Virus record (IMG/VR): IMGVR_UViG_3300045135_002615 | Coordinates: 232,643-296,642 of that record | Length of the DNA stretch: 64,000 nt | Direction: 5' to 3' (one strand) | Part shown: piece after piece, positions 9,537-56,012 of the stretch | Numbering within the stretch: the stretch's first letter is position 1 | How the letters are laid out: every line of letters starts with the position of its first letter | Made by a program: the position numbers and the translations under genes | Notes under the pieces: model-generated | Database searches by the model: none | The model's input: the letters and a program-made list of their open reading frames with translations, nothing else | Told to the model about the DNA's origin: nothing

Positions 9537-10289
9537 ATGAACTTACTATTGATCGCAACCTTGTCCCTACAATGCATGATCCCTTACGTCCAAGAAGCCT
9601 CAAGGACTGAGATACTTAAGGGGTGGAAGTATTACAGAGGTCGAGCTACCTCATCTTCACGAGCTCTCCGTCTTTTGAGGTATATGGAGGAGGGTGGCGA
9701 CATTGACACCCGTTTACTTGCCCTGTCATGGATTGAAGGGAGACTTCGTACAGGGGTTAAAAGAGGAGACCGAGGACGTGCCTGTGGGATATTCCAAATC
9801 CATGCACGACACTCTTACCCCATGTTCTCTCGTAAGAGGGGCTATGTGGATTGGGATGAAAAGGAGTCTAAGCATCTCATTGAAAGAGAATGCCGTCAGC
9901 TTGAACACACTAAGTATTCTATAACCACCATGAATAGGTACTTAGACTATATGGATAGAAGAGACTTGCACCCCTGCCATCACAACAGCGGACCAAAAGG
10001 CAAGTGCAACACATGGTATAAACAAAGACTCGATTTTTGGATCGGGTTCTTCGAGATCGCTAAGATAGCGTGCGACCCAGAAAGAAGAGAGAACATTATG
10101 GCAATGATGAGAACAGGAAACCCTATCCCTACCGCTCCCGCTCCCTTGATGCAAGGGTACATGGATGCTATCTCTGGTAAGGATGTACAAAGCGAAGACC
10201 CTGTTTACAAGTCAGGTTATGATCTAGCTTTGCTTGTTAAGGAGGGTAAGGCAGAGGCACCCACTTGGGCGGCAGAGGGGAATGGATGA
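9537..10289 (+). CDS. Secreted lytic transglycosylase/lysozyme-like protein with extra C-terminal segment
   Basis: Hydrophobic N-terminus; LLALSWIEG (catalytic Glu), GDRGRACGIFQI, HHNSG motifs. Confidence 0.65.
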   Translation: MNLLLIATLSLQCMIPYVQEASRTEILKGWKYYRGRATSSSRALRLLRYMEEGGDIDTRLLALSWIEGRLRTGVKRGDRGRACGIFQIHARHSYPMFSRKRGYVDWDEKESKHLIERECRQLEHTKYSITTMNRYLDYMDRRDLHPCHHNSGPKGKCNTWYKQRLDFWIGFFEIAKIACDPERRENIMAMMRTGNPIPTAPAPLMQGYMDAISGKDVQSEDPVYKSGYDLALLVKEGKAEAPTWAAEGNG

Positions 10290-25774: not shown

Positions 25775-25830
25775 TAGTGCTTTTATCAAGACGCTTCATA
25801 ACAACAGAAGCGTCTTGATAGGAGTAGCCT

Positions 25831-42903: not shown

Positions 42904-42953
42904 CTGTTTATGAGCCACACCTTCATGACAAGCACACCATGAAAGAGTTACGC

Positions 42954-43379
42954 ATGAATAAAATTTTTGATCAATACGTCACCCCCACTCGTAGGGCTTT
43001 CTACAAACTTGAGCAAATGGGAGAGATGCCTGAGTTTGTACTAGAGGCAGAACGCATCTTTGAGCGTCATGTCCGTGAGATGGAGCGTCTAATGAGAATC
43101 CTCAAAATGGGTCAAAGGTACACGCTGTCTGAGCTAGATCAAATGGTCGAGTCAGTTATCTCGGACCCCTCGACACTTTCAAGAGCGAGGATTGTTATCA
43201 TCCGAGGTCAGCGTAAAATCCAATTAAGCTATGAGGCTGAACAGCTCCTTGTCCAAATTAAAAAGAACATCTTGGCTATTAAGGCTGTTCGAGAGGCTCA
43301 GTTTAAAAACCTAATGGATCTCCGTGAGCATCTCATCTCCGTTCTCAGCATCCTAGATCAGTTGTCTAGTTCTTTTTAA
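42954..43379 (+). CDS. Hypothetical helical protein
   Basis: Leader resembles that of gene 6067 (TCTGTTTATG..ACAAGC..ACCATGAA). Confidence 0.6.
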   Translation: MNKIFDQYVTPTRRAFYKLEQMGEMPEFVLEAERIFERHVREMERLMRILKMGQRYTLSELDQMVESVISDPSTLSRARIVIIRGQRKIQLSYEAEQLLVQIKKNILAIKAVREAQFKNLMDLREHLISVLSILDQLSSSF

Positions 43380-43755
43380 GGCTACGCCAAACCGAGCGAT
43401 ACGCTTCTAGATAAGTATCAAGGCGGTCTGTTAGACATGAGGCATCTCCGAAGTATATCGGGATGTCTAGTCTCAGACCGCCTTCTTCGTTTTCTGGGTG
43501 GATTATGATGAGGATCATCTTGATCTCTAACTTCAAAGTGATCCGAACATCCTCATGTATCCAATAGGGGTTGCCTTCATCAAAGACCCCCTCCGCCATA
43601 CCGCACTCAAAGTTGATCTGATCTACAATCCTTATGAGTGGGTTGTAGCTCAGGGGAGTATTTTGACTACCTTGATTGTGTTGGCTCTGTCTCCACTCGT
43701 CAAAGACGTTGGGGATGACCCTACGCTTGCCCTCAATCTTTTTTGTCAGATACAT
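43366..43755 (-). CDS. GKR-family paralog (hypothetical)
   Basis: TKKIEGKRRV N-terminus; LDTYLEAYRSVWR C-terminus. Confidence 0.7.
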   Translation of the reverse strand: MYLTKKIEGKRRVIPNVFDEWRQSQHNQGSQNTPLSYNPLIRIVDQINFECGMAEGVFDEGNPYWIHEDVRITLKLEIKMILIIIHPENEEGGLRLDIPIYFGDASCLTDRLDTYLEAYRSVWRSLKKN

Positions 43756-44086
43756 GGGCTAACCATACTTCTCTAAAGTCGTCCATGAACTTAGTGCAGA
43801 AAACTTTGAAGGAGGTAGAGTCGGACCCTTTGATGTGGTTCTCATAGCTAATCGACCATCTCCATGTGATGTCTCGATCTATGGTCACCTGCCAATTAAG
43901 AGGGTAAACCTTCCCCCTGAAGATAACACCTCCAACATGGTGTTCAGGAGATTGAAGGGTGAGGTTAAGTTCCTCTAAAAAGGTCTTAGTCTCTTCCCTT
44001 GCATATTGGTGGTTCTTGTAGACTTCATTACAATCTCTTGTAGTGAGTACTCTTACCCCATCTTCCATTGTAGTCCACTTACTCAT
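43733..44086 (-). CDS. GKR-family paralog (hypothetical)
   Basis: MSKWTTMEDGVRV N-terminus; FMDDFREVW C-terminus. Confidence 0.7.
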   Translation of the reverse strand: MSKWTTMEDGVRVLTTRDCNEVYKNHQYAREETKTFLEELNLTLQSPEHHVGGVIFRGKVYPLNWQVTIDRDITWRWSISYENHIKGSDSTSFKVFCTKFMDDFREVWLAHVSDKKD

Positions 44087-44519
44087 CTACGAACCCTAGT
44101 CCTCTCCTCGTGTTGTGGATCACGGGGAAACATCGCTCACCGATCAAGATGAGTGTGCCTAAGAGGGAAGGGTCTTTAGGGTGAGCGATGAGCCCATCTA
44201 CAACGCCCTCTTCAATCCCCATGTTCTCAAGGCTCTTTAAGGCATCTTCCTCTGAGCGATGATGTATCTCCCACTTCTCTTGGTCACCTCTCTCCTTAAC
44301 CATATCAAGCATGGCTTTGATGACTTCTTCGGGGGTAGCTTCCATACCCCATGTGAGTACAGTCTCTCGGTTAGAGGGTTCCTCTACCCATTTGAGTAGC
44401 TTCTCACCTTTAGGGTCTCCTACGAGGAGGGGCTTACACAGAGGAGGTACGTTGACTTCAAGGAATAGGGGGGTGTTCTTATTCCCCGTCATCTTCACGA
44501 TCTCTAACATCTTCATCAT
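44079..44519 (-). CDS. Hypothetical protein
   Basis: ORF in a tightly overlapping operon. Confidence 0.65.
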   Translation of the reverse strand: MMKMLEIVKMTGNKNTPLFLEVNVPPLCKPLLVGDPKGEKLLKWVEEPSNRETVLTWGMEATPEEVIKAMLDMVKERGDQEKWEIHHRSEEDALKSLENMGIEEGVVDGLIAHPKDPSLLGTLILIGERCFPVIHNTRRGLGFVDE

Positions 44520-44895
44520 CTTCTTCTTGTGAGAGCACCCATAGCAGAGCGGCTACATCAGGGTACTTGGTTGCGATCTGACCCAGGTCTCCCTCATTTA
44601 GGAGCTTGTCAAACTCTTCTTCAAAGGAGTTCTCAATCTCCTCTTTTGAGCGGAAGGGTTTGAAGAAGGGGCATGTGTTGGGTACGGAAGGGTCACAGAT
44701 AGTACCTTCCCATTCTCTAGGTTTATCTGCTTCAAGCAAACAGACATGAAACAAAGGCTCTGAGGCGTTACCCCTAACGAGTCCTGAGTGTTTGCAGTTG
44801 CAAGGTTTCTTAGACGTGCCTGTCCTCACCGCCTTCTGTAAGAGTCGGTGTCTGACTTGCTTGAGCTTGTGTTTGATAGCACCGATCTTTTTCAT
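44479..44895 (-). CDS. Hypothetical Cys-rich protein
   Basis: PCNCKH..VC..ICD..TCPFF. Confidence 0.7.
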   Translation of the reverse strand: MKKIGAIKHKLKQVRHRLLQKAVRTGTSKKPCNCKHSGLVRGNASEPLFHVCLLEADKPREWEGTICDPSVPNTCPFFKPFRSKEEIENSFEEEFDKLLNEGDLGQIATKYPDVAALLWVLSQEEDDEDVRDREDDGE

Positions 44896-45512
44896 TTGAT
44901 TCTCTTTAGCTTAGCTCCATGCTTGGAGGGGCTGATGCGATAACCTATATCAGCACCTTCAGCAATACTGCTGTCGTGTGTGATACATAGGATGTCCATC
45001 TCTAATCTCTTACAGAGTACCTTTAGGAAGTCAACCAAGATGTCTACACGATCCCCATCTACGGCAGGGAACGTCTCATCGAGGATAAGCAAGGGGCGGA
45101 GACCCCTCTTTAAGATCAGCGACACACGCAGTAAGAGACTTTGGATTGTTGTGACTGCTCCGCCAAAGGCATCCAGCCCATCGCCTTCAATCTCTAACCC
45201 ATCTTTACCTTTAAAGGTAGTACGCAACTTGACCGCGACCTTACCCCTCACCTTTGTCACCTCTGCGGTCAAACCCACCTCTTGCTCTGGGAAGATCGCT
45301 TTCAAACCTTCTTCCAACAAAGAGATATAGGTCTTAACCCCACGCTCTACTTCATCTTCCGCTAGGGTATCGAGAATAGCCCCTGCTTCTGTTTTTTGGT
45401 CTAGGTCTATGTCAAGGTATGCGATCTCTTTTTCGAGGTCTTTAATGCGTGCTTCTGTGGCTTCTTTAAGTGTCTGTAAACGATATAGTCTTGATGACAG
45501 GTTGTGGCTCAT
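44892..45512 (-). CDS. C-terminal half of an SbcC/Rad50 (SMC-like ABC) ATPase
   Basis: Coiled coil then FGGA signature, LLILDE Walker B, AVD D-loop, CITHD H-switch; no Walker A. Confidence 0.8.
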   Translation of the reverse strand: MSHNLSSRLYRLQTLKEATEARIKDLEKEIAYLDIDLDQKTEAGAILDTLAEDEVERGVKTYISLLEEGLKAIFPEQEVGLTAEVTKVRGKVAVKLRTTFKGKDGLEIEGDGLDAFGGAVTTIQSLLLRVSLILKRGLRPLLILDETFPAVDGDRVDILVDFLKVLCKRLEMDILCITHDSSIAEGADIGYRISPSKHGAKLKRIK

Positions 45513-45550
45513 AGGGACTCCGATTTAGTTGTGTCCCTCTGTTATACAAT

Positions 45551-45889
45551 CTATCCAACACCATAGGCGTATGTGTATGATCGACAAGCCAATACGCCCT
45601 GCTCATTCTCATACAAGTGAGTCGTGTCATCCCAATCTTCAATATTGAAGTTGCTCTCAATCACTTGATAGTCAGGACTCAATAACAACCGAGCGTCCTC
45701 ATCGTTCTCGGCTTCAATATACGCATGTACACAGAGTCCTGTACCCTTCAAGTAGATCAGCTCTACGAGTACAAGGAACTCTGATTGTGGGAAGCTAGAC
45801 TTGATTGCACTTTTGAAAGTAGACTCAAGTTCTCTAAGCCTCCCTTCATACTCAGTTAGGGCGGCGTCTACAAAAGCTGAAGGGTTCAT
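45551..45889 (-). CDS. Hypothetical protein
   Basis: TAAGGAG SD; 112 aa. Confidence 0.65.
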   Translation of the reverse strand: MNPSAFVDAALTEYEGRLRELESTFKSAIKSSFPQSEFLVLVELIYLKGTGLCVHAYIEAENDEDARLLLSPDYQVIESNFNIEDWDDTTHLYENEQGVLACRSYTYAYGVG

Positions 45890-45959
45890 GCCTCACTCCT
45901 TATTAAGTGACATATGAGTAACACATGCTAAGGAGGTCGATATGAATAGATCAAGTAAG

Positions 45960-45992
45960 AAAAAAAAAGGTGTCCGCAAAGACACCTTTTTT
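45960..45992 (-). terminator. Intrinsic (bidirectional-looking) terminator after the clamp gene
   Basis: A-run, GGTGTC-CGCAAA-GACACC, T-run. Confidence 0.8.
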
Positions 45993-46015
45993 CTATGCTT
46001 GACAGATGGTGGTTT

Positions 46016-47227
46016 TTACATCATCCAACCGATAACCGCTACTGTCTGAACACCTGCGGTAGAAGCACCCTTGAAGACCATGTAACCCTTGTTGCCCTCT
46101 TGGTTGCAACCAATGACCACATTGTCACCCATTGTCTCAATAGCACGCTTCATGTTCAAGTAGTTGAACTTGAACTCAGGGATGTCATCGCCCTCTGCTT
46201 GAGTATTGAGGCGAGAGTGGTACATGAGATCACCTGGATCAGTAATGTCCTCAGCGTTCTCAACATTGAACTCAGGAACCTCAAGTGTGTACGAGAGAGT
46301 ACCCTTGCCACTATTGGGCTTCATCTCCAAGCAAGGAGCACCCATATCACCCTCTGCATGTGAGAAGGTGACCCTAAGGTCGGTGGCGTCAGCACCGGCG
46401 GACAAGAAGTTAATCCCTGTCATGATGCTGTTCTTGCTAACACGCCATACACGGCGAGGAGTCCAATCAAAAGCCTCTGCATACTGAGTCATCATAGCGG
46501 GGAAGGTGTGAGGGAGATCCATTGTCCCAAACACAGCACCATCCTCTGCACGATAGAACGTAGCAGAACCGCCCTTAAGAACCTCAATCACATTACCCTC
46601 ATAAGCCTTCAAGAACTTCATAAGAGGGGCGATGTCCTTGTGGTGGAGCTTAATGTCAAGACCTTTGAACTCCTCATGGCGAGCAACAGAGAGTGAAAAC
46701 CCATCACAGGCGAACGCATCCCCGCTCTCTTGAATGACGAGCATGGCGAGCTCAGGGCGGCGATTGTCGTCTTGTGAAACATAACCCTTCAAGTTGTTGA
46801 GTGTGTCATAGAGCACAGATGAGGAGATGTCCTTAACCTTCTCCGCCTCTTCGAGCTTCTCCATCCATGAAGGGAATGCCTCTGGGTCAAGACTGCTCAG
46901 AGTAAGAGAGCCGTTCTTGCTCTTAATACTCACCTCGCCCTGCTCATCCTCCTCCTCGCTGTGGGTGATCTCAAGGACACCGCTCGTAGCGGAGATCGCC
47001 TTCAAGATACGCTTACCATCAAGGCTGAACGAACTGCTGTCTTGAATGGTAGCCCCCGAAAGAGGGATCTTTGAGAAGATACGAGGAGGAGAACAAGAGA
47101 GTACTGACGCCCCGCTCCCTTCACGGACAAAAACAAAGTGTGACGTGATGTCTGAAGAAGTACCGAGTGTGCTTTGGCTGATCCCAAGTGTCTCTTTGAG
47201 ATCGGGTGTTGAAATGGTGACCTTCAT
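46016..47227 (-). CDS. dnaN: DNA polymerase sliding clamp, beta (DnaN)-like
   Basis: ~400 aa; LDPEAFP, SQDDNRRPEL, AFACDGFSL, FNYLNM motifs colinear with DnaN. Confidence 0.75.
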   Translation of the reverse strand: MKVTISTPDLKETLGISQSTLGTSSDITSHFVFVREGSGASVLSCSPPRIFSKIPLSGATIQDSSSFSLDGKRILKAISATSGVLEITHSEEEDEQGEVSIKSKNGSLTLSSLDPEAFPSWMEKLEEAEKVKDISSSVLYDTLNNLKGYVSQDDNRRPELAMLVIQESGDAFACDGFSLSVARHEEFKGLDIKLHHKDIAPLMKFLKAYEGNVIEVLKGGSATFYRAEDGAVFGTMDLPHTFPAMMTQYAEAFDWTPRRVWRVSKNSIMTGINFLSAGADATDLRVTFSHAEGDMGAPCLEMKPNSGKGTLSYTLEVPEFNVENAEDITDPGDLMYHSRLNTQAEGDDIPEFKFNYLNMKRAIETMGDNVVIGCNQEGNKGYMVFKGASTAGVQTVAVIGWMM

Positions 47228-47317
47228 GTGAGGTGATTCCTTTCCATTTGGTTAAAGTCAGAACCCGCGTCAGTGTACCACATCAACGGGCATGTCTCGC
47301 TTATATTAAGCAAGCAC

Positions 47318-47347
47318 AAAAAAAGCCCCTCATCTCTGAGGAGCTTT
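47318..47347 (-). terminator. Intrinsic terminator
   Basis: Minus strand AAAGCTCCTCA-GAGA-TGAGGGGCTTTTTTT. Confidence 0.7.
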
Positions 47348-47349
47348 GC

Positions 47350-47742
47350 TCATTGGGTGACCCTGTGCCTAAGAATCTTGGTCATTTCCATGACCCGCTC
47401 AAGATTGTGCATGAGTCTTATTCGCCTGTGTCTTGTCTCTTCTTTCAGTCCTTCGTGACTTTCCCTCATCAAGATGGAGATGAAGGCTCTGTTCACTTCT
47501 TTGGTCTCCAACCATGTCTGATAAATACCATCATACAAGAGGCGGTGTTTGTTTCGGTCAACTACACCCATTAATGTCTCAAGGGTTTTTACTGTCTCTT
47601 TAATCTTCGACTCAATGTCCACATTATACGGGTATTCATTAAGAAGGGGAGAGGCTTGGGGGTGATGGTAAGTGTCTTTTGAAGGAGTGAGTGACATGGC
47701 ACCGATCAAGGTCAATGCCGTTAAGCAGTAGACCCATCTCAT
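47350..47742 (-). CDS. Hypothetical protein with signal peptide
   Basis: MRWVYCLTALTLIGAMS N-terminus. Confidence 0.65.
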   Translation of the reverse strand: MRWVYCLTALTLIGAMSLTPSKDTYHHPQASPLLNEYPYNVDIESKIKETVKTLETLMGVVDRNKHRLLYDGIYQTWLETKEVNRAFISILMRESHEGLKEETRHRRIRLMHNLERVMEMTKILRHRVTQ

Positions 47743-48002
47743 AGGTTCTCAATCCTTGACTCAATCCTTGAGATCACTTCATCAGCTTCGTTAAGTGCTA
47801 CCTTAAGTTCCTCAACCATGCGGTTACGCTCAGAGGTCAACCTCTCAATCTCTTCCTTCAATCTATCAGGGTCGATGCCTTTACCCCTTAAGCGTTGGTC
47901 TAGCTGGGCTAGATTTGCAGTCGCGGCTTCTAGCTTTCCGAGTAGGCGTTCTTTACGCCTTTCGAGGTCAGCCTTCTTTTGAGCGAGTTCTTGCAGGTTC
48001 AT
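47739..48002 (-). CDS. Small coiled-coil protein
   Basis: Heptad pattern with central GIDP turn; AAGGAG SD. Confidence 0.75.
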   Translation of the reverse strand: MNLQELAQKKADLERRKERLLGKLEAATANLAQLDQRLRGKGIDPDRLKEEIERLTSERNRMVEELKVALNEADEVISRIESRIENL

Positions 48003-48042
48003 GTTAGCTCCTTTGTTGGGTGTTACCTGTACACACCTTATA

Positions 48043-48573
48043 CTAAGATGCCCGATACCCTTCGCGGAAGAAATCTAACACCATGTCCAACAAGGTTGTG
48101 AAGCTCCTCGGAGAGTCTACATTTAGAATCAGATGGTTTACGATCTCGCCCTTGCTGTACTTATGGAAGGTAGCGGTGAACCTCGCATCGTTCGGTGAGT
48201 GAGATGGGACTAGAATCAAAGCGGTGGGGTCGAAGTACAAGCAAAGGGTATAGACATCCGACCCCTCAGCGTGTCGAGCTACTCCGACCACAGTCAAGTC
48301 CTCATCTTTGTAGATATCCTGGTCGAACTCAAGTACCTTGTCTCGTCCCGTTTCGTCTTTAAGTTTGCGTCCGTATGGGTGTGCGAGGGTAGGGGAGAAC
48401 CCTGTGTAGGTTGATAGGTTACACTCAACCATCGCTTCCCACCACGCTTGTTGGAGGTTCTCTGACATTTTATTTGTTTGACAGAAGACCTCGTAGTTGT
48501 CGAACCTATGCCACCAAGAACCTTCACGGGCGACTCTCTTACCCTCTACAATCTCAGTCCAATTGTTTGACAC
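48043..48573 (-). CDS. GKR-family paralog
   Basis: WTEIVEGKRVA N-terminus; SFTTLLDMVLDFFRE C-terminus. Confidence 0.75.
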   Translation of the reverse strand: MSNNWTEIVEGKRVAREGSWWHRFDNYEVFCQTNKMSENLQQAWWEAMVECNLSTYTGFSPTLAHPYGRKLKDETGRDKVLEFDQDIYKDEDLTVVGVARHAEGSDVYTLCLYFDPTALILVPSHSPNDARFTATFHKYSKGEIVNHLILNVDSPRSFTTLLDMVLDFFREGYRAS

Positions 48574-48991
48574 TCTTTTGCTCTCCTAAGTAGTATTGTC
48601 TAAACCCATCAAGTATCTCGTCTAGTAATTTTGAACCCACCCACCCATTGTGTTTGATTCGGTGTATACGAGTGTGTGATGACTTTCGAGCTCCTTGGAC
48701 CCACTCCATTCGGAGCTCTACATCAAGTTGATGCTCATACACTCTCATGAAGTAGGTCGTTCCTTCTGAATGTATGAGCATTGCCCCTACGATCTTTGCA
48801 TTAGGTATGAAGATATAGTCATTCTTGAGCAAGTCGCTTTTCTCGGATAGCTCAACCGTGAGCTTTTGAGGGAACTCAATCCCTATAAACAAGGGTACGA
48901 AGTGAGCCTCAGCTAGTGCATCAGGGAGTTCCTCCCATCTTGAAAAGTTTATGGCTCTCCTCTTACCGTCTATGATTTTAGTATACGTCAC
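48554..48991 (-). CDS. GKR-family paralog
   Basis: GTG start, YTKIIDGKRRA; LLDEILDGFRQYY. Confidence 0.7.
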   Translation of the reverse strand: MTYTKIIDGKRRAINFSRWEELPDALAEAHFVPLFIGIEFPQKLTVELSEKSDLLKNDYIFIPNAKIVGAMLIHSEGTTYFMRVYEHQLDVELRMEWVQGARKSSHTRIHRIKHNGWVGSKLLDEILDGFRQYYLGEQKSVKQLD

Positions 48992-49451
48992 TTGACTCAA
49001 CCTCTCTCCAATAGTCTCGGAAGATTTCAAGCAGCTCATCTAGGTACAAGGTGAACGACCCGTCAGAGAGGACGAATGTTCTCTCCATGTACATCATAGA
49101 CTCTCGCTCAGGTCTCCAACTGAGTTTGATCAGTCTGCCCTGACCTAGATATACTCTCAGCAAGAACACCTTTTTATTGTGTGTCAGCTTCATTGCTGCA
49201 AATATCCTTTGACTTGGATCAAGTGTCATCGCATCAACATGAGCCCATAAATACCTTTTACTGAGGTCAGCCAGCTTAATAGGGAACTCGATGTCAGGTG
49301 TAATGATCTTAAAGTTGGCTTCTTCAAGGGCTTCTTTTAGAGCGATGTGGATTCTAATTGCCACACCTTTCCTGAACACTTGATGGCTGTTCCACAGTAG
49401 TCCTTGGATGGCAACCCGCTTACCATCTACAATCTCAGTCCACTTACTCAT
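48978..49451 (-). CDS. GKR-family paralog
   Basis: MSKWTEIVDGKRVA; SFTLYLDELLEIFRDYWR. Confidence 0.75.
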   Translation of the reverse strand: MSKWTEIVDGKRVAIQGLLWNSHQVFRKGVAIRIHIALKEALEEANFKIITPDIEFPIKLADLSKRYLWAHVDAMTLDPSQRIFAAMKLTHNKKVFLLRVYLGQGRLIKLSWRPERESMMYMERTFVLSDGSFTLYLDELLEIFRDYWREVESSDVY

Positions 49452-49867
49452 TGGTTAGCTCTCCAAAATGTCCTGATTGAGTCAAGCAACTCGTTCATGT
49501 ATGATGTGAAAGTCTCTTCACGATAAATAGTAGCCTTATACGCCTCACTGATTGGTCTTCCTTTGTCCCACTCATCCATGATCATTGAGTGACGTTGACC
49601 CCCTCCGAAGTAAACTCTGATTCGATAGTCACGTCCCTCATGCATGAGTTGTCCATAATAGATTAGAGTCCCGTACTGACTCTTCTCCTCGTTGAGTGTC
49701 TGACCCTCAATAAGATCTCGGAAGTGACACTCTGCCAATGCCCCCCTAACCGACTCATGGAAAGAGTACTGCCAATTGCCAATACTGACCGAGAACATGT
49801 CACTATCCCAATCAAGATACTTTTTGGCTCTCCGCTTCCCGTCTACAATCTCAGTCCACTTACCCAT
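49448..49867 (-). CDS. GKR-family paralog
   Basis: MGKWTEIVDGKRRA; TFTSYMNELLDSIRTFWR. Confidence 0.75.
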   Translation of the reverse strand: MGKWTEIVDGKRRAKKYLDWDSDMFSVSIGNWQYSFHESVRGALAECHFRDLIEGQTLNEEKSQYGTLIYYGQLMHEGRDYRIRVYFGGGQRHSMIMDEWDKGRPISEAYKATIYREETFTSYMNELLDSIRTFWRANQ

Positions 49868-50300
49868 TGATCTTCCTCCAAAAGTCCCTAAAAGTCTCAA
49901 AGGTCGCGTCCAACAGCTCCGTTAAAGAGTCATAGTTCCCAACTACAATCAAAGAAGACCCCTCCTTCCTCGTGTAGACTAAGATGGTATGGGTGTCCCC
50001 ATTAGGATCGTAAAAAATACAGACCCTGTATACGATATGCTCAATGATCCTCTGATTGTAGGAGACCATGATTAAGTCGTTGTAGTTTGGTGCGTCTGCG
50101 ATCTCTTTGCGATACCAATCTACCTGCGATACTCTTTCGGCTTCAAAAAGGTACGCATCAAAACCCAACTCCTCAAAGGCTTGGTTTACCCACCAAGTGG
50201 TGTCGTGGATATAGCTATCTTTAGACACCTGTAGCTTCCCGCCCTCCCACTTTAGGTCGCACACAGCGACCCGTTTTCCGTTTTTTATTTGTGTGTACAT
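49860..50300 (-). CDS. GKR-family paralog
   Basis: MYTQIKNGKRVA; SLTELLDATFETFRDFWR. Confidence 0.75.
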   Translation of the reverse strand: MYTQIKNGKRVAVCDLKWEGGKLQVSKDSYIHDTTWWVNQAFEELGFDAYLFEAERVSQVDWYRKEIADAPNYNDLIMVSYNQRIIEHIVYRVCIFYDPNGDTHTILVYTRKEGSSLIVVGNYDSLTELLDATFETFRDFWRKING

Positions 50301-50353
50301 GTGTTCATCCTTTCATATGTTCTTATATGAAAGGGGGTGGGGGGTGAGTCGTC

Positions 50354-50620
50354 TTACCCCAATAAGATGCCTAGATTGGGGGCATAACCTATCCATCTCC
50401 AATCAAGCGTCCATGTGCGATTGAAGTCCTTGTCATAGATCATAATGGGTTGCTTCCTGTACGCACTACGGTTCAAAGCCTGTATGTCTACCCATACAGC
50501 CCCCCTGTATATCTTGCCATCAATCCTTAGACGCTTGACTGGGAAGTATACGTTCTCTAGGTATTCTACGAAGAGGTCAAAGTTCCTAAACCTCTTCCAT
50601 CGAGTTGCTTCTTTTAACAT
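50354..50620 (-). CDS. Hypothetical protein
   Basis: AGGAGG SD; preceded by TAG-N4-TT-WAT motif. Confidence 0.65.
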   Translation of the reverse strand: MLKEATRWKRFRNFDLFVEYLENVYFPVKRLRIDGKIYRGAVWVDIQALNRSAYRKQPIMIYDKDFNRTWTLDWRWIGYAPNLGILLG

Positions 50621-50659
50621 GGGGACACCTCCTGGTAGAAAAGCGACCCCATAAAACGA

Positions 50660-50866
50660 CTACTGATCCCTCTCAGCTTCCTTCAACCACTCACCAATGA
50701 GCTGAGGATATAGGTACATATAGTCAGGGGAAGTCCGACCCCTCAGCCCCTCCATTAGCTCTTGTCTCTCTTGGGCATCAAGAGGGACGCCTTTTTCTAG
50801 GTCGCGGATCATCTCATGTGCTCTTAAGCATAGAGCTCTGAGCCGGTACTCCTCGTTGTGTTCCAT
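50660..50866 (-). CDS. Hypothetical protein
   Basis: 68-aa ORF; GGAG SD. Confidence 0.55.
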   Translation of the reverse strand: MEHNEEYRLRALCLRAHEMIRDLEKGVPLDAQERQELMEGLRGRTSPDYMYLYPQLIGEWLKEAERDQ

Positions 50867-51149
50867 CTTTATCTACTCCAATGTAAATCTCATATCCGTA
50901 CTTCACAGGCATACATGAAACCATTTTCATTGTCTTACCCTTTGGTAGCGTTAAGACCACCTTGTTGAACCTCATGTCATCATCTGAGAAGATGAGGGTG
51001 ATCTCTGTCCCGTACTCTGTCTCTTGGGTGTATTCATTGACAGAGCATGACTTGTCGTGAGTCTCGACTTTAAACGTGTAAAGGTCAATGCTCTCACTTG
51101 TGCTTTCAACTGAATGGATTAGACCTTTACCGATCACTTCTAGTTCCAT
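50814..51149 (-). CDS. Hypothetical protein
   Basis: AAGGAGG SD. Confidence 0.65.
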   Translation of the reverse strand: MELEVIGKGLIHSVESTSESIDLYTFKVETHDKSCSVNEYTQETEYGTEITLIFSDDDMRFNKVVLTLPKGKTMKMVSCMPVKYGYEIYIGVDKDGTQRGVPAQSSMLKST

Positions 51150-51204
51150 ATATCCTCCTTATAGGTTTGGTGTGTAAACCCTATACGAGGTCTTCCCACA
51201 AAGC

Positions 51205-51248
51205 AAAAAAAACCCCCTCTCTGTCCATTTCGGTAGAGAGGGGGCTTT
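51205..51248 (-). terminator. Intrinsic terminator
   Basis: CCCCCTCTCT..AGAGAGGGGG stem; plus-strand A-run gives a U-tail on the minus strand. Confidence 0.75.
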
Positions 51249-51253
51249 AGGGT

Positions 51254-51679
51254 TTACCGCTTCAAGGTGTCCCCCGTAGGGGTTCCATCATCAGGGGGAG
51301 GTGGGCAATGCTCAAAGTTAGGCTCTGCCACTACATCCTGGCAGAGATTAGCATCGAGCTTGACTACATCGTTACCCTTTACGAAGGTGATATAGCCTTC
51401 TTTGTCCTCACCTGTTGAGGTGTAATGTTGAAAGGTCACAAACTGACCATCTAACATACACACTTGAGTGACCTGTGGGCAGACAGGACACTCTTTCTCA
51501 ACGATGATGACTTTAGGGTCTTCGTCAGCGGGTGCCCCTGCCGTGATAGAGGAGCTTTCCTCCTCGTAGGTGTCTACGGGAGGTGCTTCCTCTACACCTC
51601 CATTAAGGAGGTACATCGCACCTGCGAGGAGGGTCGCGTATGCCACGAAGGATAGTCCGTATGTTGTTAAATCTTTCAT
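51254..51679 (-). CDS. Membrane-anchored protein with Cys pairs
   Basis: N-terminal TM helix; CPVCP..C..C..C. Confidence 0.7.
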   Translation of the reverse strand: MKDLTTYGLSFVAYATLLAGAMYLLNGGVEEAPPVDTYEEESSSITAGAPADEDPKVIIVEKECPVCPQVTQVCMLDGQFVTFQHYTSTGEDKEGYITFVKGNDVVKLDANLCQDVVAEPNFEHCPPPPDDGTPTGDTLKR

Positions 51680-51849
51680 GGCATAGCCTTTCCGAGATGA
51701 TAACCTGCCGTAGTCGTGAGTATGGAACAGATCATAAATGAGATGAAGCTCTTCTTTGCCATGGCAAAGAGGAGGACAATGGTGCCACCGAGCAACCCGA
51801 TAAAGATGATTGCTAAGAGAATGTTTACAATGAGGTCGAGGGTCTTCAT
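51676..51849 (-). CDS. 57-aa two-TM micro-protein, not in the ORF track
   Basis: MKTLDLIVNILLAIIFIGLLGGTIVLLFAMAKKSFISFMICSILTTTAGYHLGKAMP; GGGAG SD; ATGA overlap. Confidence 0.65.
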   Translation of the reverse strand: MKTLDLIVNILLAIIFIGLLGGTIVLLFAMAKKSFISFMICSILTTTAGYHLGKAMP

Positions 51850-51859
51850 AGCTACTCCC

Positions 51860-51982
51860 TTATTGACAGCTTAGGGAGAAGATGAGACAGGTATACCCTG
51901 TGACCACCGTCATCGCTAGAACCGACAAGAACGTCATCACATATGCAATGGTGATGATGATTGTTTGTCCGAGTGTGTCCAT
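51860..51982 (-). CDS. 40-aa TM micro-protein, not in the ORF track
   Basis: MDTLGQTIIITIAYVMTFLSVLAMTVVTGYTCLIFSLSCQ; AAGGA SD. Confidence 0.6.
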   Translation of the reverse strand: MDTLGQTIIITIAYVMTFLSVLAMTVVTGYTCLIFSLSCQ

Positions 51983-51994
51983 GTTAATTTCCTT

Positions 51995-52090
51995 TTAATT
52001 AATAAATGATAGTGAAAAGATTAAGAACTCTGCGAAGCAGATAGCACCGCAGATTGCGAGACCTAAGATGAAGATGAGAGACTGAGACAT
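51995..52090 (-). CDS. 31-aa TM micro-protein
   Basis: MSQSLIFILGLAICGAICFAEFLIFSLSFIN; starts 2 nt after the upstream stop. Confidence 0.55.
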   Translation of the reverse strand: MSQSLIFILGLAICGAICFAEFLIFSLSFIN

Positions 52091-52092
52091 TT

Positions 52093-52464
52093 TTAGGCAC
52101 CTAGAGAGAGTGTCTTGAGGATGAACCTCGTGGGCTTCCAAGAGAAAATCTTGAAGATTGCCTCTTGGGGTCCGAGCTTGCCGAGTGCCAAGAAGGGCCA
52201 AATGATGCAACCCAGAAGGAAGATACCCGTCTGTGAGAGAAGCTCTAAGAAGCCGAGCTCACGGTCACGCTTCTTGGGGAAAGCCCTCTCCCAACGGAGT
52301 TGCCACCAAAGGAAGAAGATCCACCCGCCGATGAGGGCGAACTGCGGGTTGGCAAGCAAGAACCCGATCCAAAGATCAAGACCCTCAGTCCCCAAGTTCA
52401 AAAGACTCTCACCCCAAGCGATGGTGCTGTCGATGCCTGCTTCAATAGTATTTAAGATAGACAT
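52093..52464 (-). CDS. Membrane protein
   Basis: Two hydrophobic helices; GGAG SD. Confidence 0.7.
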   Translation of the reverse strand: MSILNTIEAGIDSTIAWGESLLNLGTEGLDLWIGFLLANPQFALIGGWIFFLWWQLRWERAFPKKRDRELGFLELLSQTGIFLLGCIIWPFLALGKLGPQEAIFKIFSWKPTRFILKTLSLGA

Positions 52465-52548
52465 TTTGTTACTCCATGTGTAAGTGTGTTTGTTTTTATA
52501 TATATCAACAGCTTAGACGGGTGACTTTTTAATAAAAAAGGGTTTTAC

Positions 52549-53055
52549 ATGAGCCGTAAAAAAATAGATGTTTCTCAACAAGACATTGAACTGTCTTTTG
52601 TGCGTGATCTGATCACAAGGTCTTTTTTTCAAAGTGATGGGGTTGCTCCTCTGTATCAAAAACACTCAGAGGTACTCGATCATTGGGCGTTAAGGGGGTG
52701 GGTCAATATGGGTGAACTCACATCTCAAGGCAAAGCGAGAGTGCGAGAGCTCCAATATTATTTTGACCGACCCTCAGACCGCACAGGTAAGCTGCTATTC
52801 TTACTCGATAAAGCAATACCCTTGATGAAGGTCACTCCACGAAACCGAACCTTCATACGCAAGGTCGCTAGGGTTTTAAACTTCCACCCTCGTGATCCTA
52901 GAGACTTATTGAAGCCTTCCGATGTGACGAGACTCAGGAACTTGCTCATTAAGCATCTTGGTGATTATGAGTCACGCTTACCCACACTGCCCGCTGACTA
53001 TCCATTTGAGTGGGAGATTCAGAGACTATTGACTAATGGACCAGTGAGGTATTGA
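52549..53055 (+). CDS. Hypothetical protein
   Basis: 168-aa ORF; no recognised motif. Confidence 0.6.
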   Translation: MSRKKIDVSQQDIELSFVRDLITRSFFQSDGVAPLYQKHSEVLDHWALRGWVNMGELTSQGKARVRELQYYFDRPSDRTGKLLFLLDKAIPLMKVTPRNRTFIRKVARVLNFHPRDPRDLLKPSDVTRLRNLLIKHLGDYESRLPTLPADYPFEWEIQRLLTNGPVRY

Positions 53056-53104
53056 GCCATAGTTCCTTTATAAAGGTCGATATAGGTCTAATAAGGGGTT
53101 GACT

Positions 53105-54481
53105 ATGATCGCAACACTACATGGGATAGCATCTGCTTCAAGGGGGCTCTCAAGAGTTATTACAAATAACCTAGTCCTTCACTACAACACCTTTAACCCT
53201 AGCTCATATGTTAAAGGTCAAGGGACCACAATCAACGACCTCTCAGGGAACGGACTACATGGGACAATCGTTGGAAGTCCTCCATGGTCTACCAACTACT
53301 TTTCGTTCTCTAATGACTACATCACCTCCGCGAACTTAGCACCTTCTCTGACTGAAGTACACACCGCAGAACTATGGGTTTACCCTACAGGTAATGGTGT
53401 ACTCTTACAAGCTAATGCTCAAGCTACACCGAACACTAGCTACCATCACTCCACCATAGAGATTGTAGCAGGCAAACTAGAATTCGGTCTGTGGAACGGC
53501 TCAGGTATCACCTCTACAGGTCCAACCTCTACTATCTCTTTCAATCAATGGCATCAAGTAGTCCTTACTTACGATGGCTCAATCATCAGAGGATATCTTG
53601 ATGGTTCGTTCGCGGGTTCCGTCAATGTCACATGGGACTCTCCAGAGGACAGCACGGGTGTTTTCTACTACAACTTCGGTTATAGAGACACCACATCTCA
53701 AGGTGATGGGACTGACTTTGATGGTCGTTTTGGGATTATGAGGATCTATAGTGTTGCCTTCTCCCTACAGGCTATCCAACAGAACTACAATGCGGTCACA
53801 GGAAACGTCAGTGACTTAGTGTCGGATACCCTCAGACTCTATTATGACCCTTCTCTCTCAGCGTCATATAGCTCACCGAGTAGCCTCATTTATAATCTTG
53901 CTCCCAATACAAACACAGGCACTCTCTCTAATGTCTCCGCCAATGGTACTTACCTCACCTTTAACGGCTCAAGTTCTCAAGTCTCTGTCCCTGACTCTTC
54001 TATCTTAGAACCTGGTTCATCTAACTTCACAATAGAAGCATGGGTAAGGATACATAGCTTTGGGAGTACAATGGTGATTGCAGGTAAGTTTGATAACGGG
54101 GGCTTGGCAGCGGATGTCTCTTATTCACTACGGGTCAACGCATCAGGTGTCTTAAGATGTGAGGTAGGAGATGGCACAGGCTCACTAGATAGTCCTCTCT
54201 ATCAGGCTACAACCAACACATGGTATCAAGTCGTAGGTGTGATAGATAACACGAACAATCAGCTCAAGCTCTATATCAATGGTGTATCTCAAGGCACACC
54301 TACCACCATGAGCTATACGAGTATCTTGAATAGTGCGAACAATCTGTATCTAGGTAGCTACAACAACGGGGAATATTCTCAGTACCTTGATGGGGACTTA
54401 GGGGTAGTGAGGGTCTATCAAAGGGCTTTGACTGATGCGGAGGTGTTGGCGAACTACAACTACGACAGATCCAAGTATTGA
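53105..54481 (+). CDS. Tandem LamG/concanavalin A-like lectin protein
   Basis: LVLHY..DLSGNGLHGT, NQWHQVVLTYDG, FTIEAWV, NTWYQVV, VRVYQRALTDAEVLANYN; two LamG repeats. Confidence 0.85.
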   Translation: MIATLHGIASASRGLSRVITNNLVLHYNTFNPSSYVKGQGTTINDLSGNGLHGTIVGSPPWSTNYFSFSNDYITSANLAPSLTEVHTAELWVYPTGNGVLLQANAQATPNTSYHHSTIEIVAGKLEFGLWNGSGITSTGPTSTISFNQWHQVVLTYDGSIIRGYLDGSFAGSVNVTWDSPEDSTGVFYYNFGYRDTTSQGDGTDFDGRFGIMRIYSVAFSLQAIQQNYNAVTGNVSDLVSDTLRLYYDPSLSASYSSPSSLIYNLAPNTNTGTLSNVSANGTYLTFNGSSSQVSVPDSSILEPGSSNFTIEAWVRIHSFGSTMVIAGKFDNGGLAADVSYSLRVNASGVLRCEVGDGTGSLDSPLYQATTNTWYQVVGVIDNTNNQLKLYINGVSQGTPTTMSYTSILNSANNLYLGSYNNGEYSQYLDGDLGVVRVYQRALTDAEVLANYNYDRSKY

Positions 54482-54521
54482 GGGTAAAAAAAAGGGAGGG
54501 TGGGGCTCACTTCAAAAAAAA

Positions 54522-54662
54522 AACACCCCCTAAGTAAATCACATTAAGGTGGGAGAGTGGGCAGTCAGGGGCTTGAACCCTGGACCGTCGGTTTATGAGA
54601 CCGATGCTCTGACCAACTGAGCTAACTGCCCATGTCTTAATGTGATTTACTTAGAGGGTGTT
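54522..54662. repeat. 27-bp inverted repeat enclosing the tRNA(CAT) gene
   Basis: AACACCCCCTAAGTAAATCACATTAAG (54522-54548) and CTTAATGTGATTTACTTAGAGGGTGTT (54636-54662); 1 mismatch. Confidence 0.9.
54558..54631 (-). tRNA. tRNA with CAT anticodon (Ile2 more likely than elongator Met), no encoded CCA
   Basis: GGGCAGT/ACTGCCC acceptor with C4-G69, TCGGT-CT-CAT-AA-ACCGA; no initiator features. Confidence 0.9.
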
Positions 54663-54742
54663 ATCAACCCTATACGAGCCTGCATCCTAACCGAGTATGA
54701 CAAGCGGAAGACCATGCAGGGAACTTCCTTAGAGTTGAGTAG

Positions 54743-54815
54743 TACACTCAGCAGGGCTCGAACCTGCGACCTACACGTTAGGAATGTGTTGCTCTTCCTA
54801 CTGAGCTATGAGTGC
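54743..54815 (-). tRNA. tRNA-Arg(CCT), no encoded CCA
   Basis: GCACTCA/TGAGTGT acceptor, ACACA-TT-CCT-AA-CGTGT, GGTTCGAGCCC. Confidence 0.9.
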
Positions 54816-54819
54816 TTAG

Positions 54820-54892
54820 TACACCAAGTAGGGCTCGAACCTACGACCTACGGTTTAGAAGACCGTTGCTCTTCCGACTGAGCTATTGGTGC
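54820..54892 (-). tRNA. tRNA-Arg(TCT), no encoded CCA
   Basis: GCACCAA/TTGGTGT acceptor, ACGGT-CT-TCT-AA-ACCGT, GGTTCGAGCCC. Confidence 0.95.
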
Positions 54893-54907
54893 GTCTGTAA
54901 CAACCCC

Positions 54908-54936
54908 ATTATACTAATGTAAGGTTGGCTTGTCAC
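54908..54936 (-). promoter_or_regulatory. sigma70-type promoter for the tRNA-Arg pair
   Basis: GTGACA-N17-TATAAT on the minus strand, 16 nt upstream of the tRNA. Confidence 0.75.
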
Positions 54937-54938
54937 AT

Positions 54939-55187
54939 TTATTTGCTGAAAATTGGTGTATAGGCGGCAGCTCTCAGCTCAGCTGTAACCAAACCAATGT
55001 CATTGGTGTTAGAATTGAAGTTTAAGATCACAGACTTAACTACATCACCAAAGGGGGCAGATGAGGACACCATGTTGTAACCAAGACTCTCTATGATCAT
55101 CTGAATGTTTTGTGCATCCCATAGGGGGCAGATGATCTGGGTCTTCTTGTACGAATGTGAGATGAGGATAGGGGCTCTGACTTCCAT
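54939..55187 (-). CDS. Hypothetical protein (paralog of 55259-55534)
   Basis: Shared I.MI.E.LGY..S.P.G..AEL.A pattern. Confidence 0.7.
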   Translation of the reverse strand: MEVRAPILISHSYKKTQIICPLWDAQNIQMIIESLGYNMVSSSAPFGDVVKSVILNFNSNTNDIGLVTAELRAAAYTPIFSK

Positions 55188-55190
55188 TTT

Positions 55191-55259
55191 TTACTCCATG
55201 CTTAGGGTAAGGGCGATGGTTATGATAATAGTGACACCAAATGTGTATAGTAATATCAT
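55191..55259 (-). CDS. 22-aa hydrophobic peptide, not in the ORF track
   Basis: MILLYTFGVTIIITIALTLSME; TAATG coupling; fills the gap between the paralogs. Confidence 0.45.
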   Translation of the reverse strand: MILLYTFGVTIIITIALTLSME

Positions 55260-55534
55260 TAGTTATTCTTCTTAGAAATGATGACTGAGAACCCTCGTGC
55301 AGAGAGCTCTGCTTCAAGATCATGCTCACTTAGGTCATCGTTCTTGTTAGAGGAGGTCAACAGGAGGGCTACATATTTGAGCTCTCCGATAGGGTTAGAA
55401 CGCTTTACTCGATAGCCGAGGTCCTCACCGATCATCTCTATGGTATGGGCTACCTTACTTTCTCTACAGACCACTTGGTATCCAAGCGAGACTTTGTCTA
55501 GAAACAATGGGTTGTTTAAGTGGCATACAGACAT
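55259..55534 (-). CDS. Hypothetical protein (paralog of 54939-55187)
   Basis: AAAGGA SD; shared pattern. Confidence 0.7.
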   Translation of the reverse strand: MSVCHLNNPLFLDKVSLGYQVVCRESKVAHTIEMIGEDLGYRVKRSNPIGELKYVALLLTSSNKNDDLSEHDLEAELSARGFSVIISKKNN

Positions 55535-55584
55535 GCGTTGTCCTTTCTTTAGATTATTTGTTTATACCAGAGCAACTTGGTTAT

Positions 55585-55612
55585 ATTATTTGTGACCATG
55601 GTCACAAATAAT
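55585..55612. promoter_or_regulatory. Perfect 28-bp palindrome with CRP-type TGTGA-N6-TCACA core
   Basis: ATTATTTGTGACCATGGTCACAAATAAT between divergent genes. Confidence 0.7.
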
Positions 55613-55634
55613 CTTTGTATACAAGGAGGTTATC

Positions 55635-55982
55635 ATGTCCACATACACAACCATTCAAGAAGGTGAGCGTGTTTGGGTTTTAGACAACTCAGAGGTTCTG
55701 AGCTTCTTCTTGTTGCAAAACACTTATGAGAGAGATGGTGGTTTAGGTATTTCACCCTTCGTCTACCGTTGGTTGAAGGACGTGCTCTTAGAGATCGGGT
55801 TTAAGAGGTCTCTGACCTCAAGGTTCATACTCTATATTGGAGACCTTGAGGGAGTGCGTGTAGAAGCGGATTTCACAGACAAAGGGGTGTTTTTACGAAA
55901 CGAGACTAGGACTATAGAGCTAGTCAAGTTGGAAATGTTGTTTTCATTGATAAGGCTTTTATGGAGGGAGTATGCTATGTGA
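55635..55982 (+). CDS. Divergent GKR-family paralog
   Basis: YTTIQEGERVW, VLLEIGF, LIRLLWRE; AAGGAGG SD. Confidence 0.65.
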   Translation: MSTYTTIQEGERVWVLDNSEVLSFFLLQNTYERDGGLGISPFVYRWLKDVLLEIGFKRSLTSRFILYIGDLEGVRVEADFTDKGVFLRNETRTIELVKLEMLFSLIRLLWREYAM

Positions 55983-56012
55983 CTCTATAAGAGACATGAA
56001 AGGACTTCCTAT

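Follow-up and report, generated by a model that had tools for sequence, protein, structure and literature searches.

Our analysis identifies, in an uncultured jumbo phage (an IMG/VR entry of 296,642 bp, ~297 kb), a family of small proteins that is a real multigene family, undescribed and restricted to a single phage lineage. Several related jumbo phages show independent expansions of it that form tandem arrays of overlapping genes, and its copy number changes, with array size shifting at a conserved stretch at the gene boundaries. To the overall reading, that this is a lineage-specific array family resizing at conserved boundaries, whose products are non-enzymatic binders most likely serving host take-over or counter-defence, we give about an even chance.

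The genome encodes 14 members, eight of them inside the window (the whole stretch of 64,000 nucleotides that was analysed). They are listed here with the E-values of leave-one-out HMMs and the identities of their orthologues; L005 is a syntenic relative with about 85% DNA identity, and L012 a further relative.

43366 to 43755, minus strand: W1, divergent member of 129 aa, last gene of the minus-strand block; E 1.1e-3, orthologue 92% identical
43733 to 44086, minus strand: W2, divergent member of 117 aa; E 2.9e-4, orthologue 74% identical, dN/dS 0.32
48043 to 48573, minus strand: W3, last array gene, 176 aa, GTG start; E 4.6e-12, orthologue 74% identical
48554 to 48991, minus strand: W4, 145 aa, GTG start at 48991; E 1.5e-10
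48978 to 49451, minus strand: W5, 157 aa, modelled member; E 2.6e-23, orthologues 70% (L005) and 69% (L012) identical
49448 to 49867, minus strand: W6, 139 aa, ATG at 49867; E 2.9e-19, orthologue 71% identical
49860 to 50300, minus strand: W7, ORF of 146 aa, first gene of the five-gene array; E 1.4e-12, orthologue in L005 81% identical, dN/dS 0.23
55635 to 55982, plus strand: W8, short solo member on the opposite strand, 115 aa; E 2.3e-4, orthologue 83% identical, dN/dS 0.11

An earlier note on this DNA had described an eight-member family. All eight reading frames exist where it placed them and carry its three motifs, but the number was an undercount. Searched against the genome's 859 ORFs, the leave-one-out HMMs recovered all members, with E-values from 1.7e-3 to 2.6e-23, the weakest scorers being W1, W2, and W8. 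In the alignment, the eight window genes have in common an N-terminal [WY]TxIxxGKR[VR], a central ALxExxF, and a C-terminal LDxxLxxFRxxW[RK], while overall identity among aligned window members is 15-30%; T, G, R, E, and R residues within the conserved parts are invariant or nearly so. The proteins are small (103-176 aa), soluble, and without a recognisable catalytic motif. Their pI ranges from 4.7 to 8.8, so surfaces differ between copies, and a role as DNA mimics of the Ocr/ArdA type was rejected because values reach 8.8.

Within the array, each gene runs into the next. W7 is preceded by the ribosome-binding site AAGGA, and its end is overlapped over 8 nt by the start of W6, whose ATG lies 8 nt downstream of the TGGAGG (W-R) codons of W7, read here as a Shine-Dalgarno site. 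W6 and W5 overlap by 4 nt (ATGA) and W4 and W3 by 20 nt, and outside the array W2 and W1 overlap by 23 nt. For W4, the GTG at 48991 is favoured because GGAGAGAGG lies 9 nt upstream of it, whereas the alternative ATG at 49039, given in the ORF-finder listing, has no ribosome-binding site and is less likely; the protein collection also holds W4 in its 145-aa form (P0013). Throughout the array, conserved C-terminal W-R or G-E codons place GGAG 7-10 nt upstream of the start of the next gene, and each gene boundary is thus a conserved stretch of ~60 nt, which may also couple the translation of one gene to that of the next.

The DNA repeats at the 5' ends reported in the earlier note were borne out. 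Exact copies of a 22-mer lie at 49426 and 49842, and a copy with 3 mismatches lies at 48545, with 0 matches in shuffled sequences, and the partial match at about 44072 was found as well. Its 15-mer TGGACTGAGATTGTA occurs exactly five times in the genome, always as the family codons W-T-E-I-V. Two of the copies are located outside the window, ~257 kb off along the linear record or ~39 kb if its ends are joined, and three are in the array:

48547 to 48561, minus strand: 15-mer at the 5' end of W3, exact copy
49428 to 49442, minus strand: 15-mer at the 5' end of W5, within the breakpoint zone 49411-49442
49844 to 49858, minus strand: 15-mer at the 5' end of W6, exact copy

The N-termini of W3, W5, and W6 have identical synonymous codons at 21 of 27 positions, compared with ~10 expected (p 2e-5), while synonymous identity in their middle and C-terminal parts is as expected. 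Conservation of the 5' ends therefore exceeds amino-acid conservation. In the phylogenetic tree, the orthologues of three phages group with one another (99-100% support) and sit on long branches, indicating that the paralogues are old and that the 5' identity is not a relic of recent duplication.

Comparison with relatives demonstrates that the array changes size. It contains five genes in the window, five in L012, and six in L005, and the window segment 49411-49442 matches L005 twice, at 9544-9575 and at 10007-10038, the two flanks of the extra unit. The window and L005 thus differ by an indel of one unit, with the crossover inside the invariant 15-16 nt (the TGGACTGAGATTGTA core) at the gene 5' ends. 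The extra unit, missing from the window and from L012, may have been gained or lost. The proposal that the conserved 5' ends act as recombination points holds for the gain or loss of one unit, both breakpoints falling in the 15-16-nt core, but no swapping of units was seen. A UvsX-like recombinase is among the phage's gene products.

The 5'-end conservation could simply follow from conserved amino acids, codon bias, and translation initiation, and the size change could be an ordinary gene-sized indel that needs no special mechanism. The conserved DNA does code for the most conserved peptide, each boundary includes the ribosome-binding site for the gene that follows, in itself a constraint on sequence, and a single indel was seen, three close relatives otherwise retaining the same five genes. 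We nevertheless consider this explanation unlikely, given the N-terminal synonymous identity (21/27 compared with 10 from codon usage), the exact 15-mer in five ancient paralogues, two of which lie outside the array and free of any coupling constraint, the joining of both indel flanks within the 15-mer, and the presence of 5'-end DNA repeats in an independent array of another phage, G001.

Variation in copy number extends beyond close relatives, in agreement with the expansion suggested earlier. Against 14 copies here, a search of whole records found at least 9, 4, 1, 1, and 1 in relatives (the last two records being 57% and 34% complete). Distant relatives carry from 1 to at least 10 copies, with arrays at other genome positions, among them the independent arrays of G001 and G002. 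Among related loci collected by anchoring on the sliding clamp, seven relatives have no family gene within 8 kb of the clamp. The ancestral form was probably a short single-copy gene beside an SNF2-type helicase, of the kind that this genome has as G12 and a 317-kb relative as P0021.

Family genes evolve ~3x faster than their neighbours while remaining under purifying selection (dN 0.14 and omega 0.24, compared with 0.045 and 0.09 for 18 neighbouring genes; Mann-Whitney p 0.009). Orthologues kept in three phages have dS of about 0.2-1.0 and omega of 0.11-0.38, and with all omega values below 1 these are real genes. In comparisons of orthologues, the core evolves no faster than the ends (omega 0.22 compared with 0.28). 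Together with the lack of any omega above 1, this gives no direct indication of diversifying selection. As judged from these rates, the faster evolution would fit a host-interaction role without proving it. The variable copy number and raised rates might be expected of decaying or neutral duplicates without function, but all copies are intact, orthologues are retained in three phages at the above dS and omega, and the structure models are confident, so that we regard a family of functionless duplicates as very improbable.

The common scaffold that the earlier note had proposed is supported by two independent AlphaFold2 models, of W5 (pLDDT 87, pTM 0.81) and of W8 (pLDDT 76), which are alike in element order and have overlapping fold matches. 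Neither of the outcomes that the note named as refuting, predicted structures without relation to each other or arrays that stay the same among relatives and lack breakpoints at the repeats, was seen. The conserved parts correspond to an N-terminal beta-hairpin ([WY]TxIxxGKR), the first helix (ALxExGF), and a long C-terminal helix (LDxxLxxFRxxW), while sheet length and inserts vary between copies. Both models match type III secretion chaperones (SycN/YscB, SycT, SicP, AvrPphF ORF1, Spa15, SycH, ExsC, SpcS, and InvB) as well as YbjN-family proteins. No Foldseek match against the PDB and BFVD reached E < 1e-3. Searches of the ESM Atlas by shape and features gave weak leads only (PI31_Prot_N, DUF3137, bPH, YbjN, and DUF932). 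Prediction of a complex of two W5 copies returned a score of 0.00, which is no answer and speaks neither for nor against a homodimer.

Both models find, as candidate structural relatives, the folds of alpha-beta two-layer sandwich binding modules, namely the type III secretion class I chaperones, the YbjN family (DR_1245, AmyR), the FP domain of PI31/Fbxo7, and frataxin/CyaY. Such modules are small, non-enzymatic proteins in which one helix, an antiparallel sheet, and a helix at the C-terminus pack on one face, and the family may be built alike. The many matches to secretion chaperones and YbjN-family proteins would suit chaperone-like escorts that work as class I chaperones do, each keeping hold of its own phage protein, such as a virion protein that is ejected or internal, until assembly or injection; we find the escort role quite improbable. 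Class I chaperones are encoded next to a cognate effector within a secretion system; the family, in a phage genome, has neither beside it, its neighbours being a sliding clamp, an ATPase, small ORFs, and tRNAs.

Sequence searches indicated no described family. No member exceeded the threshold in Pfam or PHROGs, where the best E-values (0.0026-0.25) were to unrelated models, each matched by one member only. None of the 14 members matched NCBIfam or PADLOC, none matched models of known anti-defence, anti-CRISPR, or defence-related proteins, the best E-value against PDB sequences was 0.22, and the Pfam profile of YbjN (PF10722) had no match in the family. We also considered whether the N-terminal motif resembles WG beta-repeats and rejected the idea, since Pfam WG_beta_rep gave no match even at E-values up to 1. 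When 1.84 billion representative proteins were searched with the family profile, only 18 matched, mostly from the source genome itself, and in this exhaustive search of 1.84e9 proteins the family was absent from bacterial genomes; word searches gave 8-9 matches. One profile match, P0019, a repeat protein of 2,159 aa with unrelated weak Pfam matches, was dropped as spurious. Against 50,697 phage records, neither the region (blastn) nor W5 (tblastn) had a match. The nearest phage record, found through the Dda/RecD-like helicase, is an uncultured 485-kb phage with 37% identity only, and from this best match we conclude that the phage has no cultured relative. A search of the genome for the terminase Pfam PF03237 gave no match.

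Family genes lie in minus-strand transcription units together with replication genes. The array and the W1/W2 pair lie on either side of the genes for a sliding clamp and an SMC-like ATPase, all within one minus-strand gene block, and W8 is ~3.4 kb from a DnaB-like helicase. Elsewhere, the single-copy member (G12, P0021) adjoins the SNF2-type helicase in two phages, and G14 sits between clamp-loader-like genes and the UvsX-like recombinase. The other neighbours are small ORFs without Pfam matches and tRNAs, and no toxin domains were found in the neighbouring genes scanned. With the placements beside replication and recombination genes in its favour, the family might consist of accessory factors of phage replication or recombination, adaptors docking on the sliding clamp, helicase, or recombinase instead of host-directed inhibitors. 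Neighbourhood by itself is weak evidence, however, and copy number varies from 1 to 14 among related phages whose replication genes are similar, the clamp-adjacent array is missing in seven relatives, and the family evolves 3x faster than adjacent replication genes; we therefore hold a replication role to be rather unlikely.

In the reading that we favour, of non-enzymatic binding modules, the conserved ends would form a structural frame, while the divergent sheet and inserts would direct each copy to a different protein target. The most likely use would be to inhibit or redirect host proteins during the replication phase, in host take-over or counter-defence; the anti-defence role suggested for the family is putative. 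A more elaborate version, which we put forward as a rather unlikely conjecture, is a repertoire of binders in which the invariant elements (the hairpin and the two helices) dock all copies on one common phage or host machine, the divergent sheet and inserts pick the targets, and recombination at the boundaries grows, shrinks, and perhaps shuffles the repertoire, making it an evolvable counter-defence scaffold.

It was also observed that several members stand beside the sliding clamp, UvsX, and the SNF2 helicase, which counts against a host-directed use, a part in the phage's own DNA metabolism fitting equally well.

Changes in the copy number of counter-defence genes are known from large DNA viruses. 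T4 amplifies and deletes the anti-toxin gene tifA through recombination at microhomologies of 6-10 bp (Srikant et al. 2022, PMC9391042), and the 'genomic accordion' of poxvirus K3L is a further example of amplification and loss driven by recombination (Elde et al. 2012, as cited in PMC9391042). Here, both genomic marks of an 'accordion' array were found, with the number of paralogues differing between relatives and breakpoints at the repeat between units. As at T4 dmd-tifA and poxvirus K3L, tandem units change in number at short homologies, one copy of the homology being left at the junction, and a UvsX-type recombinase is encoded by this phage. In contrast to those systems, the copies here are ancient and diverged (15-30% identity) instead of recent identical amplicons, and the homology is a conserved stretch that encodes protein and may couple translation, rather than a chance microhomology.

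The MGF families of African swine fever virus comprise many diverged paralogues in arrays, accessory genes with strain-variable copy number. The present family resembles them in these respects; it differs in belonging to a phage, in its fold, and in having members among replication genes and towards the record ends. Polymorphic-toxin loci contain tandem arrays of immunity genes; in this phage, unlike such loci, there is no toxin gene among the neighbouring genes scanned, fold matches are at noise level, and bacterial genomes lacked the family when searched exhaustively.

Unannotated paralogue families abound in jumbo phages, and evidence on how they change is scarce. This family offers confident models, a probable single-copy ancestral form, independent expansions, a mapped recombination junction, and protein evolution that outpaces the surrounding genes. 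If the copies inhibit host defences or machinery, they would be a set of natural binders on one scaffold and a phage equivalent, made up of old and diverged copies, of the gene 'accordions' of poxviruses and T4 experiments. If their role is instead in the replisome, they would point to a so far unknown accessory layer in jumbo-phage replication.

Two terminator-like hairpins in the minus-strand block suggest, from the sequence, that it may contain more than one transcription unit. One of them was mapped as follows:

47322 to 47347, minus strand: intrinsic-terminator-like hairpin, an 11-bp stem followed by a T run, identified by consensus match only

This hairpin would end a unit made up of the array and two downstream genes (47739-48002 and 47350-47742). 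On the opposite strand, W8 is preceded by an AAGGAGG ribosome-binding site and by a unique 12+12 palindrome at 55585-55612.

All eight ORFs that the earlier note had assigned to a family of small proteins were found at the coordinates it gave, and each of them carries the three shared motifs, N-terminal [WY]TxIxxGKR[VR], central ALxExxF, and C-terminal LDxxLxxFRxxW[RK], at an overall identity of 15-30%. The 22-mer repeat reported at the gene starts is likewise real, being exact at 49426 and 49842 and carrying three mismatches at 48545, and shuffled sequences yielded none. Membership was tested in a non-circular manner, in which an HMM trained on the remaining members scored each one in a search of the genome's 859 ORFs. 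Leave-one-out E values ranged from 1.7e-3 to 2.6e-23 across all members; scores were strong for the minus-strand array (W7, W6, W5, W4, and W3 in transcription order) and weak yet significant for the divergent pair W1 and W2 and the short solo gene W8. The whole genome encodes 14 members, eight in the window and six elsewhere:

genome 24933-27424: three-member family cluster
genome 46040: short solo family gene
genome 119664: short solo family gene
genome 128666: short solo family gene

The source record, of 296,642 bp and 95% complete according to CheckV, is a jumbo phage encoding a DnaB-like helicase, a Dda/RecD-like helicase, a bacterial-type sliding clamp, a UvsX-like recombinase, and tail-like proteins, with five tRNAs in the window, which takes up the final 64 kb (232643-296642) of the record. 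No DNA match to the phage genome was obtained among 50,697 phage records, and the closest helicase match was in an uncultured 485-kb phage (37%). Two giant ORFs of 3,139 and 3,113 aa lie side by side at window 16355-35172 (+), corresponding to genome 248997-267814. A 460-aa protein (53099-54481, +) contains two Laminin_G_3/concanavalin-A-like lectin domains (E 7.9e-43) and has a match to a virion-structural-protein PHROG. Its likely role is that of a receptor-binding fibre component, and the common lectin fold accounts for a weak similarity to the receptor-binding N-domain of clostridial neurotoxin.

No family member was matched in Pfam, PHROGs, NCBIfam, PADLOC, or PDB sequences. A profile search of 1.84 billion representative proteins gave 18 matches at E <=1e-3, mostly from this genome itself, and two word-based protein searches gave 8 and 9 matches, whose names never went beyond 'hypothetical protein'. 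The AlphaFold2 model of W5, from a 14-row alignment (pLDDT 87, pTM 0.81), begins with two beta-hairpins at the N-terminus; a helix and two short helices follow, then an antiparallel sheet of four strands, and a C-terminal helix of 22 residues comes last. The model of the short, divergent W8 (pLDDT 76) has the same element order without the insert, which supports the common scaffold proposed in the earlier note. Foldseek searches against PDB and BFVD gave no significant match, and because of this and the element order of the models, the fold is given by description, with no known family assigned: a predicted helix-sheet-helix two-layer sandwich with a family-specific N-terminal hairpin. Such sandwiches are typical of non-enzymatic binding or dimerising modules. 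Uniform DNA mimicry was considered and rejected, because the pI of family members spans 4.7 to 8.8.

The sliding clamp is common to seven viral contigs at 32-57% identity. Profile searches of five of these whole records, two of them complete genomes of ~312-316 kb, found at least nine, four, one, one, and one family matches, the last two single-copy records being 57% and 34% complete. HMM hits at the ORF level confirm members in G001, a distant relative, and in G002. G001 has a six-member tandem array, with a seventh unit visible solely through its 5'-end DNA repeat, and a pair elsewhere; G002 has four members, and all those confirmed carry the three motifs. None of the seven relatives' loci has a family gene within 8 kb of the clamp, and therefore the clamp-adjacent array is specific to the close lineage of the window. 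In a 317-kb relative the sole copy, P0021, is flanked by an SNF2-type helicase and a ~1,700-aa protein in a block syntenic with that of G12, a member outside the window, and for this reason the short form of ~110 aa is probably ancestral. Our results demonstrate a multigene family that is new, restricted to one clade, and built on a common scaffold.

The invariant 15-mer within the repeat occurs five times genome-wide, always at the W-T-E-I-V codons of a family member; two copies outside the window and the array lie ~257 kb away along the linear record, or ~39 kb if its ends are joined. Codon identity at identical residues was compared with the expectation from genome codon usage. The N-termini of W3, W5, and W6 gave 21/27 against ~10 expected (p 2e-5) and those of all five array genes 37/76 against 27 (p 0.013); further along, the counts matched expectation, with 58 against 63 in the middle and 26 against 25 at the C-terminus. 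The paralogues are ancient: in the tree, orthologues from three phages form pairs with 99-100% support, and the branches are 1-3 substitutions per site long. The 5' DNA identity therefore cannot stem from recent duplication; it may reflect either gene conversion or recombination, or nucleotide-level selection, for example for translation initiation. The independent array of G001 has a like pattern, with 44-nt 5'-end repeats of 86-93% identity.

L005, a 22.9-kb metagenome contig from a close relative, is collinear with window 42924-57232 at ~85-86% DNA identity, two indels aside. One is a 1.76-kb insertion with a tyrosyl-tRNA-synthetase-like gene beside the window's tRNA cluster. The other is exactly one family unit, L005 having six array genes (147, 141, 157, 158, 149, and 176 aa) against five. 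The additional gene, P0015, shares 44% identity with its neighbour and 40% with W5; in the tree its branch is long and lies near the W5 group. The two sides of this added unit each align to window 49411-49442. Upstream of the W5 start, as upstream of the extra gene, the sequence matches the 3' end of the W6 orthologue, and downstream of the W5 start it matches the W5 orthologue's body; W6-type sequence gives way to W5-type inside the invariant TGGACTGAGATTGTA. Read from the alignment, this junction bears the mark of unequal homologous recombination between the 5' ends of units, and the one-unit indel with its crossover in the 15-mer supports the proposal that the 5' ends could act as recombination points. 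L012, a second close relative, agrees with the window in having a five-gene array, and the difference may be either a loss in the window or a gain in L005. Tandem expansions have been independent, with a unit indel at a conserved boundary. T4 supplies a precedent, in which an array at a counter-defence gene changes through recombination at short homologies (PMC9391042).

Within the five-gene array, neighbouring genes overlap by 4-20 nt. Conserved C-terminal codons of each gene, W-R or G-E, supply the next with its GGAG-type ribosome-binding site; GTG at 48991 is favoured as the W4 start because its site is supplied in this way. A terminator-like hairpin (47347-47322) closes the array together with small upstream genes and two genes after it, and next comes the sliding clamp, with its own terminator-like hairpin. 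A perfect, genome-unique 12+12-nt palindrome (55585-55612), just upstream of W8 in a divergent intergenic region, looks like an operator.

Rates against L005 were computed for the eight family genes and 18 neighbouring genes. Median dN and omega were 0.14 and 0.24 for the family and 0.045 and 0.09 for the neighbours (Mann-Whitney p 0.009). Since omega lies at 0.11-0.38 in all family genes, they are functional yet less constrained. Ends and core had similar omega between orthologues (0.28 and 0.22), so that on this timescale the core shows no direct sign of diversifying selection. We infer that the proteins would be non-catalytic binders whose targets differ between copies, most likely used against host functions. 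The main rival reading, in which they are accessories of the phage replisome, is suggested by their gene neighbours, the clamp, UvsX, and SNF2 helicase.

That SNF2-type helicase, which lies outside the window at genome 41897-44797 and in part in L002, has 966 aa against 533 aa in the 317-kb relative, and because the alignment splits into two separate blocks of 83-85% identity, an inserted element is suggested, for example an intein or homing-endonuclease domain. In another relative, L016, a LAGLIDADG homing-endonuclease gene (611-1792) lies upstream of a clamp-loader-like gene, in a block that also has a RecA/UvsX-like gene and an orthologue of G14, a family member outside the window. A 206-aa ATPase (44892-45512, -) matches SMC_N/RecF-type ATPases in their C-terminal part alone (PHROG 15167, E 1.9e-8); with 99% identity in L005, it is better conserved than any other gene in the block. 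The window's tRNA cluster (Met-CAT, Arg-CCT, and Arg-TCT) occupies 54557-54892, with tRNA-Met bracketed by a 27-nt inverted repeat (54522-54548/54636-54662). The insertion in L005 (2729-4489), at a point matching window 54496-54515, holds a 132-aa ORF besides the class I synthetase-like gene, which has tRNA-synt_1b (E 8.8e-54) and S4 domains. A second pair of small paralogues, of 91 aa (55259-55534, -) and 82 aa (54939-55187, -), shares 37% identity (E 9e-9) and is kept in L005; neither gene has a match in Pfam.
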